From: Lepidodermella squamata | Lineage: Eukaryota; Animalia; Gastrotricha | Length of the DNA: 64,000 bases | Assembly (NCBI GenBank): GCA_047495785.1 | Contig: JBLDXI010000055.1 | Coordinates: 930,001-994,000, forward strand | Direction of reading: 5' to 3' | Shown here: positions 3,987 through 63,493 of the stretch, piece by piece | Position numbering within the stretch: the first letter of the stretch is position 1 | Layout of the letters: each line of letters opens with the position of its first letter | The notes under the pieces: model-generated | Told to the model about the DNA's origin: nothing | Databases searched by the model: none | The model's input: only the letters and a program-made list of their open reading frames with translations | Program-made: the position numbers and the translations under genes

Positions 3987-4563
3987 TTGGATCAAAAAGG
4001 AAGAGGCGCGGCCCAGTTCAACTGCGTGCCCAAAACAAACAACAGGATATTTCGGAGAAATGGGTTAAGCGTGGCTGAATGGATCATGGCTATCAAAATG
4101 TCTTCAGACACGGCTACGGTTAGAGGGTACCAGGTGTCAGTCATAGGACATAGGACGGAAACCAGTGTCGTCGATGCGGCGCTGACATTGAATCTCTTGC
4201 TCACGTCCTTGGCGCCTGCCCCTGCTGGTAACATCGGCACATAATAAAATCCGTCAGAAAATCCCTACAGAACCTCGCGGATATAACGTAACTGAAGAAG
4301 GGCATAATGTGGCCAACAACGGCTCTTCACGACGATTCGGCATCCTAGCTATTAGGAAAGGTAGCGGAACCGGTATAGTAATCGACCCTAAAATCCAATG
4401 CGAATCATCAATTGATCAATTCGAACTGGTTAATAAAGAGAAGCGCACACTCTACGAGGCATGCAGCGACTTCATTTGCGAGGCTTACAATTTAGACTCA
4501 ATCGAAGTGCAAGGTCTCTACATTGGTTCCCGGGGTTCATCTCATAAGGCAATGTTAATGTAA
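3987..4563 (+). mobile_element. Degenerate 3' fragment of an RLE-type non-LTR retrotransposon
   Basis: Across frameshifts: GLSVAEWIMAIKM, CCHC knuckle CRRCGADIESLAHVLGAC (4166-4219), RHNKIR, then RRFGILAI..GIVIDP..EKRTLY resembling a PD-(D/E)xK endonuclease. Confidence 0.7.
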
Positions 4564-4853: not shown

Positions 4854-6158
4854 ATGCGCATCGCTGTAATTGGCGCTGGACCAGCCGGCCTTGTTACGCT
4901 GCACACAATCCAGAAACGCCTCGTCGGAAAGCTGCCGAATCTTGAAGTCATCTGCTTCGAAGGGGCGGACCAAGTCGGTGGTGAATGGATACTACGCTGT
5001 GATAAACCTGTAACAGCTAGCGATGGATTCCCAATCGAAAACAGTATGTGGCGAGGTCTGCAATCAAACACGTTCAAGCTGGCGATGGAAATCCACCCTG
5101 ATTTTCCATGGTCCGAAGAATCACTGAAAACCAATCACTTCGCCTATCAATATGAATATCTTGAGTATCTTCAAAATTTCGCTAAACATTTCGAATTAAC
5201 CAAATTTATTCGATTTTCAACGCTGGTTTACAATGTCAAACACCGCGAGTCCGAGAACAATTACCAGCTTGACTTGAAGAACTTGAAATCCGGCGAAAAA
5301 ACTTCGGAAGACTTTGACTACGTGATTTTCTGCGGCGGTCAACATCGCAAGGCCAATATCCCAAACGATATTGATGTTCAGAAGTTCACAGGGAAGGCTC
5401 TTCACTACCGAGATGTGAATTTCGGAGATTTGGTGGGAAAACGAGTTGTTGTCTACGGCACATCGTTCGCAGCTTTCGACTTGGTTGCTTCTGTTGGCAA
5501 AGGAATCGAAGTGCTGTACCTGAGCTGGCATCGCCACAAGCCTTTCTGGTATCGCGAAGAGCTTGCCCCGGCCATTCAGCTCAAACCAGCTATTTCCAAA
5601 GCTGTGGACGATACTGTTTACTTCGGCGATGGAACTTCGGTCAAAGCTGATTACATAATCTATGCAACTGGCTATAAGCAAATGCATCCCTTGTCGCCTG
5701 AACTCGACCTTGATTTCAACAAAATGAACCCTGTTTTGTTCCCGCTTTTCAAACACGTGGTGCATCCCTATCATCCCAAGCTGCTTTTTCTCGGCAAAAT
5801 TCCCCTGGTTCTTATTCGGCAACTTCGACCTCAAGCCGAACTTTGCTGCGCCATAATATCAGGCGAGGCTAAGTTACCATCGACTCAGGACATGCTGGCC
5901 GATATTGAAGCATTTCAAACGAAATGGCTAGCGGAAATCGCCAAGCTAAATGACATTGACGTGACCGTCAATTTTCCGGTTTTGGAGTTGGAAGTGCAAT
6001 TGATGCATGAAGTTGCTGAACTTGCGAAATGTGAACCTATACCCGATTATATGCCTCACCTCTACTATTGCCTGTTGAAGCTTGTTCGCAGTGACGTCAT
6101 GAACTTTCGAAAATACAAGGTCACTAGCGATTTCTCGGGATTCAAAATTAACGAGTGA
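4854..6158 (+). CDS. Flavin-containing monooxygenase, intronless, divergent
   Basis: VIGAGPAG FAD motif, FE..VGGEW, FTGKALHY FMO motif, IIYATGY; second Rossmann motif degenerate (VYGTSFAA). Confidence 0.9.
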   Translation: MRIAVIGAGPAGLVTLHTIQKRLVGKLPNLEVICFEGADQVGGEWILRCDKPVTASDGFPIENSMWRGLQSNTFKLAMEIHPDFPWSEESLKTNHFAYQYEYLEYLQNFAKHFELTKFIRFSTLVYNVKHRESENNYQLDLKNLKSGEKTSEDFDYVIFCGGQHRKANIPNDIDVQKFTGKALHYRDVNFGDLVGKRVVVYGTSFAAFDLVASVGKGIEVLYLSWHRHKPFWYREELAPAIQLKPAISKAVDDTVYFGDGTSVKADYIIYATGYKQMHPLSPELDLDFNKMNPVLFPLFKHVVHPYHPKLLFLGKIPLVLIRQLRPQAELCCAIISGEAKLPSTQDMLADIEAFQTKWLAEIAKLNDIDVTVNFPVLELEVQLMHEVAELAKCEPIPDYMPHLYYCLLKLVRSDVMNFRKYKVTSDFSGFKINE

Positions 6159-6213: not shown

Positions 6214-9200
6214 TCAGACAACAACTCCACTACGCCTAAAAATGTCCAATATTTTCATAACATCATCAGGCTTCGCATTCGGGCTGGGATTTTTCGCCAA
6301 TTCAACTGCGCTCCATCGCTTACTCGGGCTCAAACCAGTTGGGTTGGCGTTGAACTGGTTGATCAAAATATCAACAACTTTGTACCGGCCGCAATAGGCA
6401 GCGGCCATCAGCGGCGTTGCATCGTCCTTCATGATCAAATCAACTTTTGCCCCAAAAGCTGCGGCTAGGAGTTGTACAACTTGCGAATGGCCTCTGACAG
6501 CAGCTATGTACAGTGCTGTATAGCCATCAACCTTCTCAGTCAAATTAGGCTGTGTCATCCATGGAGTCGGTGAAAAGCCTGGCTGCATTGACGCGGTAGT
6601 GATATAAGGGCTTGGCTGAATGCCGGGTGGGTAATACGGATGACGGGATGTTGGTGGCGTCAAAGTTGACATCAAGTTCGACGAAGCTAAGCCTTGAACT
6701 ATATTGGCAGTGCTAAAAGCTTCATTTCTAAGGAAATTTCCGAAACTTGGTAAACCCACGCCATGGGACTTCATAACATGTGGTTTATGATTGATTAAGG
6801 GTGAAATGCTGTCGTCTTTCGTGACGGCGTCAACGTTCGCTGGAAAAGTTCCAGCTAACACCTGTACGACCTCTAAATGGCCGTTGTCAGCAGCTGCCAT
6901 TAGGGCTGTCGTGCCATTTTCAAGCTCTGCCTCGTGACACGCGTGGAAATCTCCGGCTAACACTCTCACAATTTCTGCATGACCGTTTTTTGCGGCTAAA
7001 AACAACGGGGTCATTCCATTTTTGTCCAGAGCTTCGACTAGGGCTGGGTTCAATTGAGCAAGCCGCCTGACCTCTGAGACATTCCCACGGGATGCTGCCA
7101 TATGAAGCTCATTTCCATTAGATACTGTGACTGAAATTTGATTAGCGCCTTGTGATTTGTATATTCTAGCCGTAACCATGCCGTTTTCGAAGATTTCATA
7201 CGAGCCATTCTCATCCTTTCCTTCTCCCACCTTGACCGAGGGTGGTGGACCATTTATTCCTCCGGTTGATGAAGGGTTGAAGATGACAGCAGATTTGTAA
7301 GGAACTGCAGGCAGCTGCTCTGCAACCATCACTGGCTGAGGAACGATTGGAGCTTCTTTTACGCTAACGTTAACCGCCATATTTGAAGTACTTGGCCTGA
7401 ACACAACCGCTGAATTCGCAGGGCTTGACTTAACCTCAGCAGCCACAGCTTGCGAAACCAAACGGGTTCCATCTTTCCACTTCTTCACAGCTTTATACAT
7501 CCCTAACGAGACACTTTTGAACAGATGATCAATGTCTTCATCATCCAACTCCGCCGGATCATCAATGTCATTCTCTGCAGGTATAGAAGAGACATTAGAA
7601 ACAATTAGAAAATGAGCCATATTTTAACTGACCGTCGAGAATTTTCCAAATTTTCAAGTTCATCTCACTATTTGCCGAAATTCCCAGGCGACTTGATGGT
7701 TCCTGTTTTAAAATTGTGCACTCTTGACTTAAAATTTGCAAAATTATATAGAAATTACCTTATTAGGAATTGTTTGAGGAATAAAAGCTGATTGCGATTC
7801 TCTAGTAAGTTTGGTCACCACTTCTGAAATCAAAATTACAGAGGTTCTGTCGAGGTCGTGACCAACCGGTCGGGCTTACCTTCCGTTCGAGATCCAGTAA
7901 CTTCAGCACTTTGCGGTCGTTGAACTCTTGTTGCTACGTTAGTAAAGGACACCGTAACATTTGCCGGATTAGATGAGACTAGCTTAGCCCCAGCTTCGCC
8001 CCGAACTTCGAGGACAGGTCGGAACAATTCGCTTGATAATGACTGTGACATTATTGACTGCTCCGACTCGCGCTTATCAAAATCGATGCGGACGAAATTG
8101 TTCTCAACAAGGTCTGTAATCGTCGGTCTTTCGGCGGCATTCTTCACCAGCATAGACATCACGAAATCTCTGCACTCGGCTGAATATCCGCGATTTTCAT
8201 GGAAAGGCAATGGGTCTTTGCTAAAATGAATAATATCCATATATCGGATCTATTCATCAGGTATATTATCAAATCTTACGTAATGATAGCAATGGCTACT
8301 ATGGGACCATCTCCTTGGAACTTAAAATTACAAAAAATATTTTGAGTAATGATGAAATCATGGGGAGGGTTTTCTTACTGGGCGCGTGAAGTTTGCCATC
8401 TCGTAGAGAGTAACTCCGAGGGACCAAATATCGCATGCTTTAGTGTAGGTCTTTCCCTCGCAAACTTCCGGTGAAGCATATGGGAAGGTTGCAACGTTCG
8501 TGACAGAGCTGCTGGTTGAAACCCTATTTCACAAAATATTAGATCAAATATAAATATTTTGTAAGAAAACTATATTATACCCGTCAATATCCTTTGCCAA
8601 TCCGAAATCACCCAGTTTCAAATGACGATGGTCACTTGTTAGGAAAATGTTTTTCGGTTTTATATCACGGTGAACATAACCGCCGTCATGCAAGTATTTG
8701 ACGGCAGAAACTAGTTGACGAGTCCATCGCTGTAAATCCGGCTCTGGAATTGGGCTTACGGCAATGTGGTAAATGTATTGTTCGAGATCGCCTCCGTCAC
8801 AGAACTCAAGCACAAGGTAATAAATATCACAGCCTTGCTTGAGAAAATCATCCCCATGGTATCTCTCTGAAACCGAATAAATGTTTAGAAATTTAGATTA
8901 AATCAACAAGTAAGTACCTTCGAATGCGCCAAATACTCGCACAATATTCGGATGATCAAAATCCTTCATCTTAGAGTGCTTAAAAATAACCGAAAATTAA
9001 ATCAGGATTATTAAAATGGGTCATGGCTTTGATGTTATACCTCTTGACGGCACATCTCGACGATTTTATCAGCAAATTTTTGAGTGTGGCTGTGATCTCC
9101 ATGGCTTGTTATTGTACGGCGAATGGCTGTTAGATTGACTTCCTTCATGACATAATCTGCATAGTCGTGGTTTCTTCGGCAGTGATAAGCGGCGCCAAAC

Positions 9201-9256: not shown

Positions 9257-10063
9257 AGCGGCTTTTTTCGGTGAAATAACTTTTATATAGGATGCACAAA
9301 GCGGTTTGTTGGACAGCACACAAAAACAAGATAATATATATGGACACCCTCTGTTTGCAGGGGTTGAAGATAAAGGAGATATTAGGAAAAGCTATTACTG
9401 ATTACTGATAAAAAGATTAGTTAATTGTAGCACTAAATTCGGACACGGCGTACTCTTGATATACTTGAAGATATCTATTTATCGGGGGAGCTGTGCCTAT
9501 CTTTGTCCAGTTGTTGCTGTAATGTTACCGGATCAGTTGTGAACATCTGAAAGTTATTGCAGCGGCAAGTGTGCCAATTTATCGACGGCAAAACTTCGAG
9601 CGGACGTAACTGAATAAAATACTGAATAACGCCAATTTCATTTGCATTTTATGAGACTGATCAGTAATTCTCTTTTCGAAAAGAGAATTATTCGAATGAA
9701 TTGGACTCCTGTCCCTGATAAAGCATTGTTGCCTGTTTGAATCATTCATCTATTACTGCCCGGTCAGACAGGTGTAATAAACCGGAAAAGTTCCATATTC
9801 ATTTTTTTCTGTTTCAGTTTTTTCGTTGCTAGACGATTTGGATTTTATGAGACCAGTCGCCGGCGGTTTTTTGCGTTCGTAGACGCTTTGAGAAACATGT
9901 GCAACTGTGTGCAAATAACGAGCCACGTGGTGTTTTTCTCAGCCTCTTACACAGCGCTTACAAAGCCTGTTGCCACAACGCGTTTAAAAACTGGCTGGGT
10001 AGCAGTCGAATTCTAGTTTGATTGATTTTTGCTTATTTTTCTAGGTGAAAATTACCTTATGAA

Positions 10064-12398
10064 ATGAGTTACATTCTTCAGCGTTGGAAACTCGGCGGTC
10101 GTGATGGTGATGCATTGACTGCCATTCAAGCGCCCGATCTAAAAGACGAGGCTCGGCGATTGGGGCTGAAAGTCGGTGGACAAAAAGGTGGGCTGTTTTC
10201 TTTCTGTAACTAGAATTTACGAATTATTCGATTTTTTATAAGGTGAGCTCATGTGGCGAATCGACGAGAAATATGCAGAACTTTACGGCCGGTCTGGAAC
10301 ACCTCCGCCTGCTTCACCAGCCACTATTTCAAATTTATCTGAGAACGAAGATGTAAGAACGTTTCCGCTGTTTTCAGAGAGGTGACCTGTGACCTACTTT
10401 TCATAAAATTACAGCCTGCGCCGAAGGAGAAAATTCCTGGGCTGGGCACGATGCCCCATTCGCTGATAAAAAAGAAGCCACCAAAGCGGTCTGAAATTTA
10501 CGAAAAACAGCTACGGAAACGCATGGCTTGGTACCTATCCGGAAAAGCTATCGCCCCAGAGGACGATTCTGAAAATCGCAAGTCTGGCCAAGGGAAAACA
10601 AAAGCTACGAGCTTTGTCTACCATCAAGAAATAACTGAAATTGATCCGAAGATTTTGATTGAGGACTCGGATTTCGAGGTTAAAATTCCGTTGGATGAAG
10701 CTATGGGGAAGGCGCTCGTCGCTTTGGCAACTGAAGCTCCAATCGGAAGAGGAACTGAAACCGTAATGGACAAGGCTATTCGCGACGCTTGGCAGATTTC
10801 TGGCGAAAAGGTAAGTCTACCTTAATCTAAAGGCGTTTTTAACTTAAATTTCGGCAGGTGTTTTTTGGCAATGAATCTTGGACAAAGCTGTTTACAAATT
10901 CAAAGTCCTCGCCGTTGCTTGAATCTATCAGAAAAACCCTAGCGCCCCGGGTTGGCACGATTTCAGCGAAATTTTACAAGCTCTTGGTGTATGGCGAGGG
11001 TTCATTCTTCAAAGCTCATCGCGACACCCAGCGCGACCCGCATCACTTCGGGTCAATCGTCGTTTTCCTGCCTAGCATCTACTCGGGAGGCGAACTCATC
11101 GTCCAGCATGGTCCAGATAAGAAAAAGTTTGACTACGGCCTACCAACTGGCAGCTCTTCGTCCAAGTGAGCTCAAAATTAAGATGAGTTCAAATTAAATT
11201 GTTTTGTATTTTTTTATGATTTTTAGATGCCACGCCGTCGTTTTTTTCACGGATTGCCTTCACGAAGTATTGCCGGTCAAATCTGGCTACCGATTGACAC
11301 TCACCTATCAGCTTTTCTACGAAGGAAACACAGCCCCGGAAGTGCCGATCACACCCGACTTCGTTGCCGATCGTATCGCTCACAATTTGGACAAACTGCG
11401 GCGGCTGAATCACTGGAAGGGCAAGAACGCTGGCTGGTTGCTCGAGCATCGATACGCCCTTGCTTCATTGAAGCCTAGCCTCCTGAAAGGCGCCGATCGA
11501 GATGTTTACGACGCAATTATGACTTCGGGTCGTTACCAGGTCGAGCTTATTCCTGTTGAAGTTGATGCTTCGGGCCTAGGATGGGATGACAGCGCGTTTC
11601 ACACAGCTGAAGGCTACTATGGCCAGTTTCTCAACGAGAAAAGCGACTGGGGGATTTTCTTTGTGGTAAGCTATTTCATCGAAAATTCCGCAACTCTACT
11701 TTGATTGAATACATTTTCAGATCACTCGTTTAGCTGGCAAGCAGCTTGAAAAAGATCTGAAAGCGGCTGAGAAAGCTAACAAGGGCAAACGAGGAGTTGG
11801 GAAATTGTCGAAGAAACGAAAACGAGGATTCGGAGGTTTCGGAAGGGGTTTCGGCGGCTACAGCAGCTACAAATACTACGACCCGGAGGAGAGCGATGAA
11901 CAGCGAGTCGAAAAGCACGCCAAAAATCCTAATCTCCTGACGATTTTCACCTATTTCCCCGAGGGCTACAAAGAAACTGCTGGCGATACAATTTTTCTCA
12001 ACGATTTCGGCAAGGTGACAGTGGGAGATGTTGTCAGTTCGAAGGCTCACGCGACTGGCAATACTGGCACTGATTTTGAACTTCAGTACACTAAGGCGGC
12101 GTTTCTTATCACTCCAAAAGACGGGAGTAAACAGCCAGCTTCTGCTGGGTTATTTTCGCCGAAACAACCGGCAAAATCAGCCACCCCGAAGCCTGCCGCT
12201 GCGTCGAGCAAACCTTCAACGAGTGGGACCGCTCCGTCAAGTGCGGTCGAGGCTAAGACCCCGCGAGCAATGCTAGCCCAGCCGGCGATTTCCAGCTTTT
12301 TCGCTAAATCTATCCAGTTGCAAAATCAGCGAAAACGCCCTGCTGATGAAGATGTGATCGATTTGGAGGCTGGCTCAAGTTCGACTAGTGATGATTAA
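10064..12398 (+). CDS. SAP-domain 2OG-Fe(II) dioxygenase with PIP-box/NLS/SIM tail, 6 exons, ~684 aa
   Basis: Exons 10064-10187, 10243-10352, 10415-10810, 10858-11165, 11227-11665, 11721-12398 join in frame at GT-AG; DLKDEARRLGLKVGGQKGELMWRI (SAP); KLLVYGEGSFFKAHRD...HEVLPVKSGYRLTLTY (HxD..H..R). Confidence 0.85.
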
Positions 12399-12731
12399 GG
12401 TCCAGGTGATTCGAAGATTTATAAAAAATAACTGACATTGCTTTTCCTATATATATCTGAGATGTTTTCATATTACTTTTGGCTACTCCAAACTATACTC
12501 TTAATACTGCTTGCTCACCTTTTGTTGCTCATTAACCGGAATATCGAAATAAATAATATCGGAATTGTGATCTTTGAAATAATTGTTTTACCTCGAAATA
12601 TTCCGAATTCGAACTTGTTTATCTAGTGGCTGGTTGGAAAAGTTTGGCAGAAGTACCGAAAATGCTTTATTATTTTATTCAGAAGAAAAGATATTTTATT
12701 GGGTTCGAGTCAAAGTTGAATGAAAAATCAG

Positions 12732-13819
12732 TTAATGCTTGGTTTCAGGCATTTTGATTTCGTCTTTTTTACCGCTTTCCAGCCATTGCGTGAATGTCAT
12801 CATTTTCGGGTTAAGCTTCCGGGACACATCAACGCTTCGAATAGCCGCCAAATCCTCGGCACAATCGTTGAAAAACTGGAACATATTAGCAAGCTCGACA
12901 GCGCCCTTGAATGGCAACTTGCGATAGTCGTCGTAGCTGATCTGGCGAAATCGAATTTCTCGCCCGAGCGAATACGCAATTTTAGCGGTCATTTCCTTCA
13001 TGGACAAAAACTCGCCGCAAATCGCCACTCGCTTGTTGATGTACTCATCAGGGCGTTGAAAAATGTCGAGTGCACATCGGCCAATGTCATCAGACGCAAT
13101 GCCGGGAATTCGGGTGTCTGGCTCGATCGGCAGAGCGATTTCAAGCTTGCCGTCATCGCCGATTTTCGGCGCCAGCAGCTGCAGAAAGTTGTCCCAGAAG
13201 AATGCGGTTAGCATATAGGTGGTTGGAACGTTGTACTCTTCAAAGAAATGATCAGCCTCGCCTTTTGCGTCGCACTGTGGTACCTTGTAACGCTCGCCGG
13301 CGCCGAGTGACGGCATTGCTAAGCTGGTCAAAATCGGCAATCGGCGCCGGGAATCTTCGAACGTCGACCAAATAGCATGTTTAACCCCGGCCAAGCTAGA
13401 AAATTGATAGTTTCAGCCACATTTTGAGGAAATTTAAGATCTAACCTAGCTGCCCTGGCCATATTCTCAACCTGTCGAAGTTCATCGTCAGGATCCATGC
13501 GTTCCCAGAAGAATGAGACGCAAAACACGCCGTAGACGCCATCGAAAGCTTTCACCAAGGAGTCGAACACACGAACGTCACCGTGAACAACTTCAACACC
13601 TCGCTGCCGCAATTGATCGGCTTTTTCCGACGACTCGTCACGCGTTATTGCACGCACGGTGAAACCATTGCGGTCACCGCTTTCTAAAATTGCATTCACC
13701 AAGCTGCCACCTTTGCGAAAACCGAAAATGAAAATGTTTGAGATTAGATGAATAATGAAAATTGTACCTTGATGGCCAGTGGCTCCAACCACAGCCAATA
13801 CTTTAGTGCTACCAATCAT
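12732..13819 (-). CDS. NmrA/HSCARG-family protein, copy 1 (3 exons)
   Basis: VVGATGHQG Rossmann motif, RAITRD, WSTFEDSR, ANMFQF; introns 13767-13711 and 13445-13396. Confidence 0.9.
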
Positions 13820-14161: not shown

Positions 14162-15861
14162 GATAAGAGGGTCCCAGAAGAATGGTCAACGGCTATAATT
14201 ACCCCAATTTATAAAAATAAAGGTGAGAAATCAAAATGCCAAAATTACAGAGGCATCAGCCTCTTAAGTGTTGTAGGAAAACTCTATGCCATTATTCTCG
14301 AAAGAAAATTGAGACTATTAATTGGGTCAAAAATTTCTAAACTGCAATTTGGTTTCCAACCCCTCAAGGGCACCAGAGACTGCATTTACGTTCTCCGACA
14401 AATTATTGAGAAAATTATATTCTTTAAGAAGGAACTCCACCTAGTCTTCATCGATCTCGAAAAAGCCTATGATCTGGTGGACAGGGAAAAAGTATGGGCC
14501 GCCCTCCAAAATATGGGTGTAGAACCCAGCTTAATTGAAGCTATTCAAAGTTTATATAAAGTAAATAAAGTTGCTGTTAGAGTCGATTCTGAGCTCTCAG
14601 ATTTCTTCTATGTTACCAGGGGACTAAGACAGGGTTGCCCGTTGTCTCCTTTGCTATTCATAGCGACCTTCAACAAAATTTGCGAAAAAATATCTGCTGA
14701 AAAATTAGGCTTTCCTATTAGCGAGACCGCAAACAGCGAGACCGCTATGAGCGCGACTGATTTCCTAAATTTACTAGCGTTTGCGGACGACGGAACACTT
14801 TTAGGCATGAACCACGACGAAATTGCACGACTACTTCACATTTTCGATTTGGCTTGCACCGAATTGGGTCTGAAAATTAACGCGGCAAAAACTCAATATA
14901 TGATTATTTCTAGAGACGAGTCAGCTACTCAAAATTACGAATTGGAATTGAACGGGAAAAAACTTGAAAAAGTGACCAAATTTAAATATTTAGGGAGTAT
15001 TATTACTAGTGACGGCAAAATCGATGAGGAACTAAACTACAGAATTTCTAAGGCAGGCAGTGTTTTCGGCGCCATGAACAAATTCATGTGCAACAAAAGT
15101 CAGGTTTCCATAGCCACAAAACTTAAAGTACTGACATGTGTTATAATACCTACCATCATTTACGCCTGCGAATCGTGGAACATATCGATAGCCCAAGAAA
15201 ATAGACTAAACACTATAGAATATCGATGGCTTCGATCTATAGTAGGTGTCCACCTAATGGACTATATTCCAAATATAGACATTCGACTTGCGTTATGCGA
15301 AGGTCTCATTGAAGTGAGCCGCATAGTTGAAAAACAAAGGCTAAGATATCTAGGTCACATAATTAGGTCACGTGACTATGACGCAGAAGGACTAATACAC
15401 AAAATATATATTTGGACGCCTCCGCTTGGGTGGTTTGCACCCAGAGGTAGACCTCGAACCAGATGGATCAACGGAGTGCATAGAAGCCTTATTAAAGTAG
15501 GTCTTACTAAGGAAATTCGCCGGAAAAAGAAAACCAATAAGGAAAATAAGGTCAAGGATAAGAAAAATAAAACCACCAAGAAACGAGAAAATAGAAAAAA
15601 TCCCGGCGAAAAGGATTTTGAGATCAAAATTATTCCCGATGTCCAACTAGCGGAATCGGTTTCTTTCGAAAAAGATGAATGGCGCATGGTTGTAAACTCG
15701 ATTGAAAATTACGAATTCTATACAAAAAGCAGAATCCTCGACTGTGGGGGTGGGTGAGGATCATTCTTCGCCTGCCTTCGCCCTCTTCAAAACCGGAAAC
15801 GGTACACGACGCTCAGTCTCGAAGAGGCAAAATAAAACTATTATTATTATTATTATTATTA
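14162..15861 (+). mobile_element. 5'-truncated RTE-like LINE with (ATT)n tail and 12-bp TSD
   Basis: Open frame from RVPEEWSTAIITPIYKNKG..NYRGISLL through QFGF, FIDLEKAYD, GLRQGCPLSP, FADD, FKYLGS, RGRPRTRW; TSD TTGTTTTGTTAA at 14150-14161 and 15862-15873. Confidence 0.93.
14309..15757 (+). CDS. LINE reverse transcriptase (partial; endonuclease missing)
   Basis: RT motifs with FADD catalytic box; frame extends upstream to about 14163. Confidence 0.9.
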   Translation: MRLLIGSKISKLQFGFQPLKGTRDCIYVLRQIIEKIIFFKKELHLVFIDLEKAYDLVDREKVWAALQNMGVEPSLIEAIQSLYKVNKVAVRVDSELSDFFYVTRGLRQGCPLSPLLFIATFNKICEKISAEKLGFPISETANSETAMSATDFLNLLAFADDGTLLGMNHDEIARLLHIFDLACTELGLKINAAKTQYMIISRDESATQNYELELNGKKLEKVTKFKYLGSIITSDGKIDEELNYRISKAGSVFGAMNKFMCNKSQVSIATKLKVLTCVIIPTIIYACESWNISIAQENRLNTIEYRWLRSIVGVHLMDYIPNIDIRLALCEGLIEVSRIVEKQRLRYLGHIIRSRDYDAEGLIHKIYIWTPPLGWFAPRGRPRTRWINGVHRSLIKVGLTKEIRRKKKTNKENKVKDKKNKTTKKRENRKNPGEKDFEIKIIPDVQLAESVSFEKDEWRMVVNSIENYEFYTKSRILDCGGG

Positions 15862-16484: not shown

Positions 16485-17809
16485 TCAAACGTCAGCTTTC
16501 AGGTCGGCTTCATCAATCTCGAGAAGGGCCTGAGTCGCGACGTTGCTTTTACCCAACTCCGAAATTTTCTTCATCGAAGCCGAATGAGTGGTAAAGGCTG
16601 ATAGGGTCGAGCAAATGTTGGCCGATCGAACTGTTCGCGCCACAAGCTGCCGCTGTTGTCGCCACGCTGAATCCTCCTCATCGGCCAGTTCATCGTCTTC
16701 CGCGTCGTCCTCAGCTATGACATACGTATCCTTCGTTGTCGTATCGCCGTAATAGTAAGAATCGGCGATAGTTCGCGTTTTCGAAACACCACTCCGCCCA
16801 GTTATTTCCGTCCGGAAAAATATTACGCAGGATAACGCGTAAATATGCAGGCCACTGCGAAATGTCCAAAACGTGACTACAGCCGCCCAAAATAGCTGGA
16901 ACCACGCATACGCCGACAATGCTGCCATGTCTTTGAACTTGACCAAGCAATAAAGCAATAGCCAGTGATAGCAGAAATCGACAGCGATGTACATAGCCAT
17001 TATGATTATCCAGATTATCAATACACGATGGCTACGAAGGTAAATTCCGAGGAATAGCAGAAAAGTTGCCAGGGTGATAGCGCCGTTCCAACCTAACATG
17101 AATAGTGCTGGCTGTTGAAGACGAGCGGCTTCGTCTGGAGAAAATAGAGGCGCCAGCATAGTCTCATTATTACTCGGGGTCGAACTGTCGAAATCATCAG
17201 GCGTTGTTTGGCCCAGGAGATACATCGAAGGGCCTAATATCGACAGGGCATGAGGCTTGTGAACATTTGCAGCTGGCTTCGCTGTTGTTGTTGTTGTCGA
17301 TAAAAGTTTGAAATCGATGATTTTACCAATAAGTGACGATTGGTTAGCCTGGTGGTTTGCTGAGAAGTGAACATTGATCGTGGGAATATTTTGGCCGTGC
17401 TTGTGGGAATGATGAGTTTGGCGCACGACTCGAAGAATTTTCGAATAAGCGCCATCTTCATCTTCCCAAGCGTCGAGATCGATTTCATCCTCGGGATGCG
17501 CCTCGCCCTCGCCGTGCCGTTCGACAGCCATGGCTGCCCATTGCTCGGCTAGCTTCTGTTGTTGGGCGCGAATCATCGCGTCTCGGCGATACAGGAAGGC
17601 CATGCGTGACGAGCGGGGCGAGCTGTAAAATTCGCCCATGTAGTAAATAGCTAAACACTGCAAGACATGAACGCTGGTTGACACGATAACGTGAATGCCC
17701 GACGCCATCGAACCATCTCGCAGGGTGTCTAAATAAAAAACATGAGGTTTGAATGAATCTCTGCGACAAAATTACCCCAAAAGCAGCACCAGTTATTGCT
17801 TATGCTCAT
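16485..17809 (-). CDS. Multi-pass membrane protein (LAPTM/DUF4728-like), 2 exons
   Basis: Exon 17809-17776 plus a 47-bp intron gives MSISNNWCCFWDTLRDGSMASG; about four hydrophobic segments with a long first loop. Confidence 0.7.
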
Positions 17810-18137: not shown

Positions 18138-19976
18138 ATGTTTTTCTTTGCAATTTTATTGATTTTTATTATTGCACCGGTTTTCGCCGAAGATGAGAAT
18201 CTATCAAATTTGTTAGGATTCGGCTTTATTCCTCTGAATGGTTCAAAGCCGAATGATATATCTTCATTCGAAATTTCCTTGGACCCGGCGAATGGCAGGT
18301 TGGAAATCTCGACAATCCTATTGAGATTCGACACAGCTGCTACATTCAACATAAAGGTAGATATTGCTCTTCGCCACCTGTTCAGTGCGCCATCACCTAT
18401 CGCCGAGGGTTCGATATCATGGTTGACTCGACCCGAATCGCCTTCCTTGCCAACATTTGCGATAAATGGCAGCTCTGAATTTATATCCCACGCATTCCAC
18501 AATTGTAATGTATCGCCAAATTTATCAAGTTTGGAAATGCCTATTCCAGAGGGTGAATGGAAATCTGCCGGCGGAAATTCAAGAAAAGTCCTGCTTCTCA
18601 AACTGCCAACGCGAAAATATTCGACCGACATGAACGGAGAACCTTACACAATAGCGATGTCATTGATTGTCGGCGAAGAAGGAGTTGAGATGCAGCAATT
18701 TATCCCAGAGATTGGAGGATGCCATATATTTTCCAACTTGCAAATGGCGTCCAGTCAAATAATAGTTGCCCCGCTCAAACTGACCATCAAAACTATTGGA
18801 AATCTGAAAGCTAATAGCCAATTGATTGCCTTTGAAGATGACTCCAAAAAGTTAGCGAAAATGCTCGAGGGAAAGTCTAATACTAAAGAGGCGTGGAATA
18901 AATTTGTTCAATTTCTCGAAGCAGAAGGTTGTCCTCGACTTGAGAACTGCAAGCCCTATTTGTTATCGGCTCACCCTGATTATCGGCGATTTCACGAATT
19001 CGGCTGCCGGATGCCCTTAGATCAAAATAAAGCAAATGAGCATGCATGGTGGCAGTGTGGTATGGGTTCCAGGGATTCCTACGGCAATTTGCGCCGTCGA
19101 ATATCGGTGAATCCAGAATTGACCGATCACACTCGACTCGCCTGCTACAACTTCGAAGATTTACGGCGACTTCGGTTGAATCCTATTGTTACATGGCAAT
19201 GGTTTGATGAATTAAATCAGGCTTTTCAAACGATTTCCGGCGGTCCAGATGAACCGGGAGAGTTGAACGAATTTGACTCGAATGAATTGCTGATACCATC
19301 TTCCTGGAAGACCGACACGCTTTATCGATGTCTCGACCGAAATTCAAAGCCAGTCGTGGAGTACTACTTTGAAAATCCGAATAATTACCTGAGTGGGGTC
19401 CAATGTGAGTTAATGGATGCTGAAATAGTTAATGAATCAATCCGGCTTTGGTTCGGGGAAGAAAACTCAATGCGATTCTTGTGCTCTGGTTCATCTTCGG
19501 CGCTTGTTGTAGACAGCATTTCGACAAGCTTCATAGACGAGTATGACGGCTTTCCGGAATTTATATCTGAAAGCAATCTCATTACAGAAGAGGCTAAATA
19601 CTCGGAAGCAGAAAATGCAACGGTGATAGCAAGCCGTCGGTCTGAATCTGAGGATTATACAGTGAAAGCTACCATTCGAATAATGGGAAACTGTGAAGCG
19701 ACGACACACGAATGCCGCGATGTTCCCGAATACCACCAAACGAAACTTCAAATTATTCTCAATGTTGATAATGGAGCGAAGGTGGTAGCAAGGCAATATT
19801 ACGTTCATTGCTACCGGCGCGGGTTGATTGGCCGATCAGAATTGGCTGCAGTTAGATTCTGGAAAATGGCGCAAGAGTACTACGGCGATGCTTATAATTA
19901 CGCTATTGAATTCTATAACAAATATCTAGGTCAAACGGACGAACAGCCAGACGAAGAGGCACAATCTCCAGAATGA
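18138..19976 (+). CDS. Uncharacterised secreted Cys-containing protein, intronless; paralogue of 61601-63493
   Basis: Signal peptide MFFFAILLIFIIAPVFA; 612-aa ORF; shared motifs EFGCR/WWQCG/YGNLRRR/YRC/VVEYY. Confidence 0.8.
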   Translation: MFFFAILLIFIIAPVFAEDENLSNLLGFGFIPLNGSKPNDISSFEISLDPANGRLEISTILLRFDTAATFNIKVDIALRHLFSAPSPIAEGSISWLTRPESPSLPTFAINGSSEFISHAFHNCNVSPNLSSLEMPIPEGEWKSAGGNSRKVLLLKLPTRKYSTDMNGEPYTIAMSLIVGEEGVEMQQFIPEIGGCHIFSNLQMASSQIIVAPLKLTIKTIGNLKANSQLIAFEDDSKKLAKMLEGKSNTKEAWNKFVQFLEAEGCPRLENCKPYLLSAHPDYRRFHEFGCRMPLDQNKANEHAWWQCGMGSRDSYGNLRRRISVNPELTDHTRLACYNFEDLRRLRLNPIVTWQWFDELNQAFQTISGGPDEPGELNEFDSNELLIPSSWKTDTLYRCLDRNSKPVVEYYFENPNNYLSGVQCELMDAEIVNESIRLWFGEENSMRFLCSGSSSALVVDSISTSFIDEYDGFPEFISESNLITEEAKYSEAENATVIASRRSESEDYTVKATIRIMGNCEATTHECRDVPEYHQTKLQIILNVDNGAKVVARQYYVHCYRRGLIGRSELAAVRFWKMAQEYYGDAYNYAIEFYNKYLGQTDEQPDEEAQSPE

Positions 19977-61600: not shown

Positions 61601-63493
61601 TCATTGTTGGAATTCGCCAGAAATAAAAATAGGCAATAATAGAAAATAAATCCACGCAGAGCTGAATCGATTAGCTTGGCTGACGTAAACCTCCAAAGCG
61701 ACCACTTCAACTTGTCTGTCAAACAACATATTAACTCGTAAATAAGCCCCGGTGCCAATTTCAGGTCCGTTTGTGTTTGGATAATTCCCTAAATTGACCG
61801 TTAAATGAGCTTCAATCCAAGAATGTCTGCCTTTGACTTCATCGAAAACCACTGTAACATGAGCTTGTATGCCAATATTTTGCAGCATGCTTGTTGGGTA
61901 GGTAAAGTTGGCATATGCCTTGGGCAACTCGGTAACTTCCGAACTCAGCATGCAAATTACTTTGAAAGACTTTACCTCGGAAAACTGGATGTGTATCGAG
62001 CCATTTAATCGCGGGAATGTCGCCGATTTAAACAAGAAACAATCTGTAACGTAACGCAGCGGATCGTCCAAATAGTACTCGACTACGACTGATTCCGCCG
62101 GCGCGATGCATCTAAAAGCCGTGTAAGTCCACTCGCGACCTCGAACGCCGTTTGTATATATCCAGACAACATCTTTTCCCGGGTTCAACAATTCGAGCCA
62201 ATCAAGATCATTTTCCAGCAAAGCTTGCGGATCGTCTTTGTTAACTTCCCTCGTAGATTCTATCTCTGTCTTCAGCGCATCTATCGATTCATATTGATCA
62301 TTTTTGAAAATTTCCCAGATAACTTCGTCCTCTGGCCTTTTCCCATCCGAATCGACGCAGTTGAGCTGAATAGGGACTCGATCAGGAAATGCCAGCCTTC
62401 TTCTGTGGTTCCCGTACGTAACCGCTCCTTCTGCGATAGTTCCAAGCGAGCCACAGCGCCACCATTCCAGTTCTTTAAAATCGATTTCATTCAAAGTGTA
62501 CCGGCAACCATATTCACTAGCTACCCGGTCTTCATTCTCCGTAAGAAACACCGGATAACAGTTGACAGCTCGGCAATTCGTATTATTCAACTCAGCCGAT
62601 ACGTCGAGTGATAGTTCTTTGCTAGGTTTGCGTTCAAACAATTTCTCAGCGACTTGATCGATTTTTTCCTCGAAGAGAATGACCTCGCTGTATTGAAATT
62701 CACCCTGCTTTTCAATGGTAAGTTTGCCGGGCTTGATATCGTAAGGATTATGCATATCTTTCGCCATCAATGGGTAACTCTTACAGTCTGGATCTTTCGG
62801 CGCGAAGACATGCATTTTAACTGAGGCAACCTCTGGGCTTTCGCTCATTGATCGAACCTGTAAATCCGCCTTGCTTGCCAATGTTTCTGCCTCACTTTGG
62901 ACCGACTTCCTTTCAGTCAAAATACTGAACAGCATTATTGTTACAGCGTTTGGTTTGTAAATTGTCCAAGATGCAGGATGTTCATCGTAACCAGTCTTCA
63001 AAGTCTCAGGTGCAACTGTAGTTTGTGGAGTTGTCGTCGTTACGGGGGCCTTTGTTGCTGTCGGAACATCATAACCCAAAGGATCCCTATTCTTCGTCTT
63101 AGCGCAGTTGCCGCCAAAGCGTTGCATAAACGCAGCCGCGCCATCTGCGGCAAATTTCGGCATGAAGTTATCGTTGCTATGGATCTTCCAGTTGATGAAG
63201 CCAGTAAATTTCTCAATGCTTAAGCCGACTTGCTTATTGGTGGATCCCATATTAGGAACGCTAACCGTCAGATTGATTTCAAATGATGCGTCTGAGCCAT
63301 CTTTCGCCGCAAATGCAAATAGAATTGTCGATATCTTGAAATCAGCCTGATCCGGCAGATTTATTTCGAATTTCTTGGTATCATTGGCATCTTTGAACAG
63401 TACATGACCAAGTCCAAGTTGGCGAATTCCATTACTAGTCAGAACCAATTCGAACTGCAGGTAAACAAAAGCAAGAGCAATGACGATTGACAT
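61601..63493 (-). CDS. Uncharacterised secreted or membrane-anchored protein, intronless; paralogue of 18138-19976
   Basis: Signal peptide, Thr-rich stretch, EYGCR/WWRCG/YGNHRRR/FRC/VVEYY, hydrophobic C-terminus (WIYFLLLPIFI). Confidence 0.8.
   Translation of the reverse strand: MSIVIALAFVYLQFELVLTSNGIRQLGLGHVLFKDANDTKKFEINLPDQADFKISTILFAFAAKDGSDASFEINLTVSVPNMGSTNKQVGLSIEKFTGFINWKIHSNDNFMPKFAADGAAAFMQRFGGNCAKTKNRDPLGYDVPTATKAPVTTTTPQTTVAPETLKTGYDEHPASWTIYKPNAVTIMLFSILTERKSVQSEAETLASKADLQVRSMSESPEVASVKMHVFAPKDPDCKSYPLMAKDMHNPYDIKPGKLTIEKQGEFQYSEVILFEEKIDQVAEKLFERKPSKELSLDVSAELNNTNCRAVNCYPVFLTENEDRVASEYGCRYTLNEIDFKELEWWRCGSLGTIAEGAVTYGNHRRRLAFPDRVPIQLNCVDSDGKRPEDEVIWEIFKNDQYESIDALKTEIESTREVNKDDPQALLENDLDWLELLNPGKDVVWIYTNGVRGREWTYTAFRCIAPAESVVVEYYLDDPLRYVTDCFLFKSATFPRLNGSIHIQFSEVKSFKVICMLSSEVTELPKAYANFTYPTSMLQNIGIQAHVTVVFDEVKGRHSWIEAHLTVNLGNYPNTNGPEIGTGAYLRVNMLFDRQVEVVALEVYVSQANRFSSAWIYFLLLPIFISGEFQQ

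Follow-up and report, generated by a model that had tools for sequence, protein, structure and literature searches.

Positions 10064-12398 of the window (the whole stretch of 64,000 nucleotides analysed) contain, on the forward strand, a six-exon gene with an intact reading frame. Its coding sequence of 2055 nt corresponds to 685 codons, including the stop; the five introns, 47-62 nt long, all have GT-AG borders and are in frame. Exon 1 (10064-10187, aa 1-41, ending in DLKDEARRLGLKVGGQK) carries the start codon, the first ATG downstream of a stop, and the first half of a SAP-like motif, up to the GT donor at 10188; exon 2 (10243-10352) adds SAP helix 2 (ELMWRIDEKY) and a Pro/Ser linker. A basic linker (KKKPPKR, RKR), with NLS-like clusters at aa 97 and aa 112, fills the first part of exon 3 (10415-10810), and is followed by the onset of the oxygenase domain (aa ~143, about 10607), homology to the oxygenase family setting in at residues 143-167 of the model. 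Exon 4 (10858-11165) encodes the first half of the double-stranded beta-helix, while exon 5 (11227-11665) encodes the second half of the catalytic fold and the onset of a C-terminal domain. Exon 6 (11721-12398), a single uninterrupted ORF, includes a variable loop, the end of the C-terminal domain, a disordered tail and the stop codon. The two SAP exons, missed by the ORF track, had been proposed by the first-pass annotation, and the six-exon gene is found where it had been placed.

A diverged allele differs from the window coding sequence by 26 synonymous and 9 non-synonymous changes, with a divergence of about 5%. Its indels fit the exon model: those of 3 nt lie in exon 6, one of 2 nt in intron 5. 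The synonymous excess reaches into the tail, where the two Arg codons of a basic cluster, RKRP, show synonymous changes only. The gene is intact and under purifying selection. Since the exon 6 ORF is uninterrupted, and its aa 538-595 match the TGNxG...Y..A module of the oxygenase family, the tail shares its exon with conserved sequence. Only two sequencing runs contain the locus, and only one of them, X1, is possibly RNA: its exon cover is patchy (depth 0.4-11), with no intron-spanning joints, those present being opposite-strand and artefactual.

The oxygenase family includes 711 cluster representatives at E<=1e-3, with a best identity of 48%, from bacteria, fungi and protists. These matches, chiefly fungal, protist and bacterial, agree with the earlier attribution of this oxygenase type mainly to fungi, oomycetes and bacteria. 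No near-identical protein was found by a profile search of protein collections, seeded with the window exons, and exon 6 alone, used as query, gave no match; two metagenome scans for orthologues produced nothing, or the distant L009 and L010 only. The window gene lies in a eukaryote-type clade (SH-aLRT 96), where accessory modules are found: SAP in P0012, P0009, P0154 and P0078, BRCT in P0004, and a borderline Macro in P0006. For every named member looked up, the annotation reads hypothetical protein or generic 2OG-Fe(II) oxygenase and nothing more specific. The first-pass annotation knew of no described protein with this architecture. For the literature this holds: no paper was found describing it, or joining SAP or a PIP-box to this oxygenase type. 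It does not hold for the databases, where the unannotated KAL0480360.1 of Acrasis kona (P0012) combines SAP and the same oxygenase. A Mytilus protein, P0013, was rejected as another animal homologue: six repeats match a 37-aa stretch. Assignment to a defence system or to a named bacterial family was also discarded, PADLOC and NCBIfam having returned the generic 2OG domain alone. The gene neighbourhoods of the bacterial homologues are variable and feature no conserved partner; some adjoin SbcD, RNase_T or Metallophos nuclease genes.

The SAP-like motif is interrupted by intron 1, and straddles the junction between exons 1 and 2. When compared to the SAP profile (PF02037), exon 1 alone scores 16.6 bits; the joined 45 aa score 21.9 bits (E 1.4e-4) and cover profile positions 8-32 of 37. 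This score is below the Pfam gathering cut-off of 23.9, and the motif is therefore named SAP-like. The pattern, a helix, a Gly-containing turn and a second helix, can be aligned to the complete SAP domains of the four SAP-bearing homologues and to an orthologue-like gene on an animal contig (L001). There, a phase-1 intron (4036-4096) cuts the SAP motif in the same place, and a single ORF continues beyond it into the oxygenase. A SAP-like motif encoded by the first two exons, where a SAP motif was originally suggested, is supported by the alignment and by the shared intron position. A second candidate DNA-binding element is an insertion (11811-11873) composed of KKRKR, NLS-like, and GFGGFGRGFGG, RGG-like. 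Its sequence KKRKRGFGGFGRG (aa 490-502, from 11811) had been placed in the tail, and is actually located within the variable loop of the conserved C-terminal domain. At this very position, a SAP domain is inserted in the protist homologues P0012 and P0009; the equivalent loop in a homologue model has a pLDDT below 50.

The tail, where 85% of the residues are disorder-promoting, contains three short motifs, each at the position first reported. The canonical PIP-box QPAISSFF (12279-12302, aa 646-653) fits the consensus QxxPsi-xx-theta-theta, as defined in PMC6881253; its flanks, TPRAMLA and AKSIQLQ, have a net charge of +1 each. The basic cluster RKRP (12330-12341, aa 663-666) is found 9 residues on, and the SIM-like DVIDLE (12351-12368; core aa 671-674 of 684), which continues into the Ser/acidic end AGSSSTSDD (both within 12351-12395), lies at the acidic C-terminus, 17 residues from the PIP-box. 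The SIM, DEDVIDLEAGSSSTSDD, features a psi-psi-x-psi hydrophobic core and an acidic/Ser flank, a combination which, by criteria set post hoc, occurs in 1.3% of whole-protein and 0.04% of tail shuffles. Joining in one protein of SAP-like motif, oxygenase, NLS-like clusters, PIP-box and SIM, as proposed at first, is supported by the gene model along with these motifs.

Part of this tail is shared. A terminal KRK cluster, followed by an acidic (I/V)(I/V)(D/E)(I/L) motif, is found from basidiomycetes to this animal, the KRK cluster preceding the terminal SIM in both fungal and protist homologues. Of 25 clade members, 6 have the NLS+SIM tail, as do 3 basidiomycete proteins; in the other parts of the clade proteins, the background rate is 0.08 per 45 aa. 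The carriers of a terminal SIM are P0145, P0120 and P0044 (basidiomycetes), P0039, P0026, P0005, P0153, P0015 and P0019; enrichment relative to the other clade has a Fisher p of 0.009, under criteria set post hoc. Because SAP or BRCT modules and the terminal NLS+SIM tail recur in the clade, nuclear and SUMO targeting appears to be a family trait, and not a local add-on. The idea of a possibly foreign enzyme, locally fitted with nuclear and replication-fork motifs, is consequently to be divided: nuclear targeting recurs within the clade, while the PIP-box looks lineage-specific, and is so far the only tail element unique to this protein. From these motifs the protein is likely to be nuclear and chromatin-bound, and its SIM is rather more probably functional than not.

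The PIP-box itself has about an even chance of being functional. It may instead be a chance short motif, in a nuclear, SUMO-directed oxygenase without any coupling to PCNA or replication: this alternative is unlikely, though it is the one that survives best. No homologue examined has a canonical PIP-box, the fungal and protist tails featuring KRK and SIM only; a canonical motif occurs in 2.4% of whole-protein shuffles, and motif searches are known to yield false positives (PMC6881253). Yet the motif lies in a disordered tail, where the rate falls to 0.03% of 90-aa tail shuffles, between positively charged flanks, and precedes the SIM by a distance resembling that of Srs2. Moreover, the diverged allele shows one synonymous change within the PIP-box, which leaves the protein unchanged. 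Conservation, suggested as a check on the motifs, gives a mixed picture: the SIM is found in homologues and the PIP-box is kept in an allele diverged by about 5%, but distant homologues lack the latter. Orthologue tails were recovered neither by the exon 6 search nor by the two metagenome scans. We infer PCNA coupling at the level of motifs.

The catalytic residues follow the order HxD...H...R: H264-R-D266 (11017-11025) is encoded in exon 4, H325 (11261-11263) and R335 (11291-11293) in exon 5. H264, D266, H325 and R335 occupy nearly invariant columns of the family, and correspond to the HxD...H iron triad and to the basic residue for the 2OG C5 carboxylate. Further downstream, the H, Y, L, K and D of LEHRY...LKGADR (aa 385-404, 11441-11500) are also nearly invariant. 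Both stretches had been noticed as the core of the enzyme, and their family-wide conservation agrees with that role. The last strands of the C-terminal domain, ATGNTGTDFELQYTKAAFLI (11955-12128, aa 538-595), contain the G and N of TGNxG and a Y, invariant or nearly so. A real, active 2OG-Fe(II) oxygenase is predicted, with high confidence, from this conservation and from a homologue model.

When searched against PF13640 (2OG-FeII_Oxy_3), exon 4 alone scores 23 bits, with a gathering cut-off of 27, the domain being split by intron 4; close homologues score 30-44 bits. Pfam gave PF13640 alone, with neither an AlkB nor a TET/JBP profile, for the exons at E<=1 and for homologues at E<=0.01. The only sequence match to a solved structure is a marginal one, with a PKHD hydroxylase (E 0.6). 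The model of P0002, a homologue whose core is about 45% identical, has a pLDDT of 81.8 and a double-stranded beta-helix fold; its closest structural matches are PPHD (Z 13.9), the PHD of Trichoplax (Z 13.7) and PiuC (Z 13.4), while AlkB ranks 20th (Z 10.1). For the C-terminal domain, Foldseek gave no match at E<=0.001, and the best VIA score, Z 4.4 (R3H, Smr), is below a meaningful level. An OGFOD1/Tpa1-like architecture with two DSBHs was rejected, the second domain being alpha/beta and devoid of a beta-helix. The overall architecture is that of a prolyl-hydroxylase-like catalytic domain, joined to a family-specific alpha/beta C-terminal domain of ~170 aa. The core is predicted to be closest to prolyl hydroxylases, a fold class which does not in itself fix the substrate.

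A protein substrate is slightly favored over a nucleic acid. According to the opposite view, the enzyme would oxidise a nucleic-acid base or lesion, in an AlkB/TET-like role performed on a prolyl-hydroxylase-like scaffold, and would reach forks in the way that ALKBH2 does via APIM. The DNA-directed modules (SAP and RGG-like loop here, BRCT and Macro in homologues), the alignment with AlkB and the nuclease genes beside some bacterial homologues fit such a role, for which ALKBH2 and PCNA offer a precedent (PMC6881253). It is nonetheless improbable, somewhat more so than a chance PIP-box: Pfam assigns the core to PF13640, every one of the best structural matches is a protein hydroxylase or PiuC, and the bacterial contexts are inconsistent. 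The AlkB/TET analogy, drawn at first, is therefore weakened, Pfam and fold both favoring prolyl hydroxylases, although AlkB still aligns.

That the gene model is wrong, with the SAP exons or the tail belonging to another transcript, or with the whole being a decaying foreign insert, is very improbable: the lack of RNA junctions in the patchy X1 and of the protein in the collections searched is outweighed by the five in-frame GT-AG introns, the synonymous excess extending into the tail, the SAP intron kept in L001, and the tail lying in the same exon as the conserved C-terminal module.

The best explanation, to which we give roughly one chance in two, is a nuclear Fe(II)/2-oxoglutarate oxygenase that would bind DNA by its SAP-like motif and basic/RGG loop, read SUMO-modified PCNA by its tail and hydroxylate a substrate. 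The N-terminal motif and the loop would recruit the protein to chromatin; the PIP-box, the basic cluster and the SIM would together read SUMO-modified PCNA, as the tandem receptor of Srs2 and PARI does; once docked, and with O2 and 2-oxoglutarate as co-substrates, the enzyme would hydroxylate its target, a replisome or chromatin protein more probably than a nucleic-acid base. Here we infer the nuclear location, the binding of SUMO and PCNA, and the class of substrate. A wider scenario may be put forward tentatively, and is rather doubtful: a family of SUMO-directed nuclear hydroxylases, extending from basidiomycetes and amoebae to an animal and recognisable by the terminal NLS+SIM tail and by repeated SAP, BRCT or Macro fusions, may have gained a PIP-box in the animal lineage, becoming a SUMO-PCNA reader for protein hydroxylation at forks.

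2OG oxygenases couple oxygen and metabolite levels to signalling. To our knowledge, few of them are replisome-tethered, ALKBH2 being the textbook case. The gene draws attention to an entire uncharacterised family, and the eukaryotic members of this family seem equipped for chromatin and SUMO-dependent recruitment. If the explanation is true, it offers a testable route into protein or DNA hydroxylation at replication or repair sites, and a second, independent case of the tandem PIP+SIM reader principle.

Among the systems closest to the window protein are its homologues P0012, P0009, P0154, P0078, P0004 and, from basidiomycetes, KAF4617001.1, KAJ8075198.1 and KAJ7744541.1, all labelled "hypothetical protein", which have the same two-domain oxygenase, matching the model at E values of 1e-40 to 1e-72, and bear SAP or BRCT fusions, or the terminal KRK+SIM tail. 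They differ in the lack of a canonical PIP-box and in the position of SAP, which is found in an internal loop, or at the N-terminus with Cys-rich repeats. PHD/P4H-type oxygenases (PPHD 4iw3, Trichoplax PHD 6f0w, Dictyostelium PhyA 6t8m, PiuC 9qn0) have in common the HxD...H triad, the 2OG Arg and the double-stranded beta-helix; they align with the homologue model at Z 11.7-13.9 over 165-173 residues, with an identity of only 14-18%. The family of the window protein features, in addition, an N-terminal strand extension and the C-terminal alpha/beta domain, which has no PDB match.

ALKBH2 belongs to the AlkB family and carries an N-terminal APIM instead of a PIP-box, without SAP or SIM. It resembles the window protein as a 2OG-Fe(II) oxygenase with a short PCNA-binding motif (PMC6881253), and differs in its catalytic domain, AlkB ranking below prolyl hydroxylases in the fold comparison with the homologue model. 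Targeting modules are combined in a similar way in SDE2, a protein active at forks in which a PIP-box is joined to a SAP domain (PMC5131917), and in PIAS1, with an N-terminal SAP and the SIM core VIDLT (PMC4907222). The window SIM, VIDLE followed by Ser and acidic residues, is PIAS-like, its core matching that of PIAS1. A run of Ser and acidic residues also follows VIDLT in PIAS1. SDE2 and PIAS proteins have no oxygenase domain, and their likeness to the window protein is limited to the targeting modules.

For the tail, a close parallel is Srs2, where a PIP-like motif and lysines are followed by a SIM formed by the last five residues (PMC3439891). In Srs2, a helicase, the PIP-like motif is degenerate, while the window protein is an oxygenase with a canonical PIP-box, and there is no homology between them; the likeness to Srs2 and PARI, as read from motifs, consists of a PCNA motif, a basic cluster and a C-terminal SIM, all within about 40 residues (window aa 646-684).

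The oxygenase gene at 10064-12398 (+) has the look of a compact eukaryotic gene, whose six exons (10064-10187, 10243-10352, 10415-10810, 10858-11165, 11227-11665 and 11721-12398) are separated by introns of 55, 62, 47, 61 and 55 nt, all five GT-AG, and join into a coding sequence of 2055 nt (685 codons including the stop). The motifs listed in the first-pass annotation are all present where it placed them: H264-R-D266 (11017-11025), H325 (11261-11263), R335 (11291-11293), LEHRY...LKGADR (aa 385-404), the PIP-box QPAISSFF (aa 646-653, 12279-12302), RKRP (12330-12341) and DVIDLE (12351-12368). The exception is KKRKRGFGGFGRG, which had been assigned to the tail, and is found at aa 490-502, in a variable loop within the conserved C-terminal domain. 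The tail cannot belong to another gene, since exon 6 encodes both the tail and the conserved TGNxG...Y..A module (aa 538-595).

The SAP motif reported in the first two exons does extend across both of them and can be aligned well with complete SAP domains in homologues; the Pfam score, however, rises from 16.6 bits for exon 1 alone to 21.9 bits (E 1.4e-4) for the joined 45-residue stretch, below the cut-off of 23.9, and the motif is therefore termed SAP-like. An orthologue-like gene is present in the metagenome contig L001 (47% identity over aa 151-451), which shares its ENA sample with contig L007, where an animal Cys-loop receptor domain is encoded. In the L001 gene the upstream exon carries the same SAP motif (RELRDEAKRLGFEV...), split at the same point by a 61-nt phase-1 GT-AG intron, and 3' of this intron a single unbroken ORF takes in the second SAP helix and continues into the oxygenase. 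Only two public runs contain the locus. X1, whose identification as RNA is a guess, yields scattered exon pieces at low depth, without intron-spanning joints across the gene. X2 contains a diverged allele or strain: the 35 differences listed in exons 4-6 divide into 26 synonymous and 9 non-synonymous ones (about 6-7 and 4, respectively, in the tail, aa 596-684); the PIP-box features a single, silent change (TTC>TTT), and the indels are two of 3 nt in exon 6 and one of 2 nt in intron 5. Selection, the orthologue-like gene and the shared exon provide strong, if indirect, evidence for one real, expressed protein.

Over 9900-12600, reference-like and 5-7% diverged contigs coexist in X2 for parts of exon 6, at about 72 of 140 depth each, which suggests two haplotypes or homoeologues in the sample. 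Upstream of the gene are an intronless-looking FMO-like monooxygenase ORF (4854-6158, +; 125 bits) and an ankyrin-repeat ORF (6214-7620, -). Downstream, an NmrA-like ORF (12732-13394, -; PF05368, 79 bits) is convergent with it, the two stop codons lying about 330 nt apart, and an ORF of 482 aa encoding a reverse-transcriptase domain (14309-15757, +; RVT_1, 101 bits) is probably a retroelement, 2 kb away. Long ORFs of 407, 612 and 630 aa (16485-17708, -; 18138-19976, +; 61601-63493, -) have no Pfam match at E<=0.001.

When exon 5 was compared by phmmer with 1.84 billion representatives, 711 of them matched at E<=1e-3, the best with an identity of 48%. Homology of the spliced model to this family covers aa 143-453 and 538-595, which gives the family two domains, the second interrupted by a variable loop. 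Members include numerous fungal proteins, protist ones from Acrasis, Acytostelium, MMETSP and EukProt, and bacterial ones about 750-800 aa long (Bradyrhizobium, Mesorhizobium, Flavobacterium and others); those found are named only, for example, "hypothetical protein" or "2OG-Fe(II) oxygenase", and a sequence search of solved structures gave no match. As all nearly invariant family residues are kept, the protein should be catalytically competent. Among five bacterial loci no conserved partner gene was seen; nuclease-type genes (SbcD, RNase_T, Metallophos) lie nearby in three (L003, L004, L006), and the remaining ones lie amid toxin-antitoxin, Abi or transposase genes.

In a quick maximum-likelihood tree built from 94 core domains, the protein falls in a 24-row clade (SH-aLRT 96) with Acrasis, two EukProt rows and eukaryotic-looking metagenomic or Logan rows, apart from a large, mostly bacterial clade. 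Accessory modules were surveyed in this eukaryote-type clade and its fungal relatives. SAP is N-terminal, with Cys-rich repeats, in P0154 and P0078, and inserted in the C-domain loop in P0012 (Acrasis kona KAL0480360.1) and P0009; P0004 carries a BRCT. P0006 (L007:6001-7971), a paralogue-like, catalytically dead protein with a replaced HxD site (..HFKTNGSN..), from the animal-bearing sample that also yielded L001, features a borderline Macro domain fusion (21.5 bits, cut-off 22). Since these modules point one way, the earlier idea that a foreign enzyme was recently given nuclear motifs holds only in part: targeting to DNA and chromatin appears, from domain content, to be a trait of the clade. 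The gene may have come to the animal through transfer, or been inherited vertically with wide loss in other lineages; the family matches showed no further named homologue from an animal, a Mytilus match being rejected as a repeat artefact.

Disorder-promoting residues make up 85% of the last 90. The SIM there is VIDLE, with DED before it and AGSSSTSDD after it; that of PIAS1 is VIDLT (PMC4907222). Many homologues end similarly: a KRK cluster follows a long low-complexity linker and precedes an (I/V)(I/V)(D/E)(I/L) core flanked by acidic residues or Ser, at or near the C-terminus. Basidiomycete tails (Agrocybe, Marasmius, Mycena: ...KRK...VIDLSSDDD, ...KRKFDAVIDLTDSD, ...KKRRMDDSADVIDLCSP) share this design; P0145, P0120, P0044 and P0248 (1050-1260 aa) close with a long Ser/Thr/Ala/Pro-rich linker, KRK and (V/F)IDL(S/T/C), after which acidic residues come in some cases. 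Protist-like examples are P0039 (DVIEISDEED...KKQK), P0026, P0005/P0153/P0015 (ending IIEID) and P0019; in the L001 relative, TVVDLSGDDSD stands at the N-terminus. This recurrence makes the putative NLS+SIM reading much stronger than a motif call on a single sequence. QPAISSFF, as previously annotated, fits the canonical PIP-box definition, and its flanks are net positive, which favours binding (PMC6881253); shuffling produces such a box in 2.4% of cases for the whole protein and in 0.03% for the tail. None of the homologues carries one, and no orthologue tail was recovered by our searches.

Fold comparison was performed on the model of homologue P0002 (pLDDT 81.8). Its first domain is closest to Pseudomonas prolyl hydroxylase PPHD (Z 13.9), followed by Trichoplax PHD (13.7), PiuC (13.4), Dictyostelium PhyA (11.7), OGFOD1/Tpa1 (11.2-11.4) and AlkB (10.1). 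Modelled by itself (pLDDT 71.7), the second domain matches nothing in the PDB (best Z 4.4). The two-domain arrangement is also that of the bacterial 761-aa ESM Atlas cluster (TM 0.71 over 370 residues). A nucleic-acid substrate, for which ALKBH2 and PCNA offer a precedent, is less likely, given this fold ranking and the Pfam placement of the core.

The best reading, drawn from motifs and comparison, has three steps: the family would be SUMO-directed and nuclear; the PIP-box added in this lineage may narrow recruitment to SUMO-PCNA, with the SAP motif and an RGG-like loop supplying further DNA contacts; and the prolyl-hydroxylase-like core would hydroxylate a fork or chromatin protein. Each part is of a known kind: 2OG oxygenase, SAP, PIP-box, SIM, tandem SUMO-PCNA reader. 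A literature search found no paper in which these parts come together on a two-domain oxygenase family that is itself uncharacterised, in line with the first-pass annotation, which knew of no such architecture. The order in the tail, PIP-box (646-653), basic cluster (663-665), SIM (671-674) and acidic end (684), mirrors that of Srs2, in which SUMO-modified PCNA is recognised jointly by a PIP-like motif (1148-1161), lysines 1160-1162 and a SIM made up of the final five residues; in vivo, neither the PCNA nor the SUMO site is enough on its own (PMC3439891).
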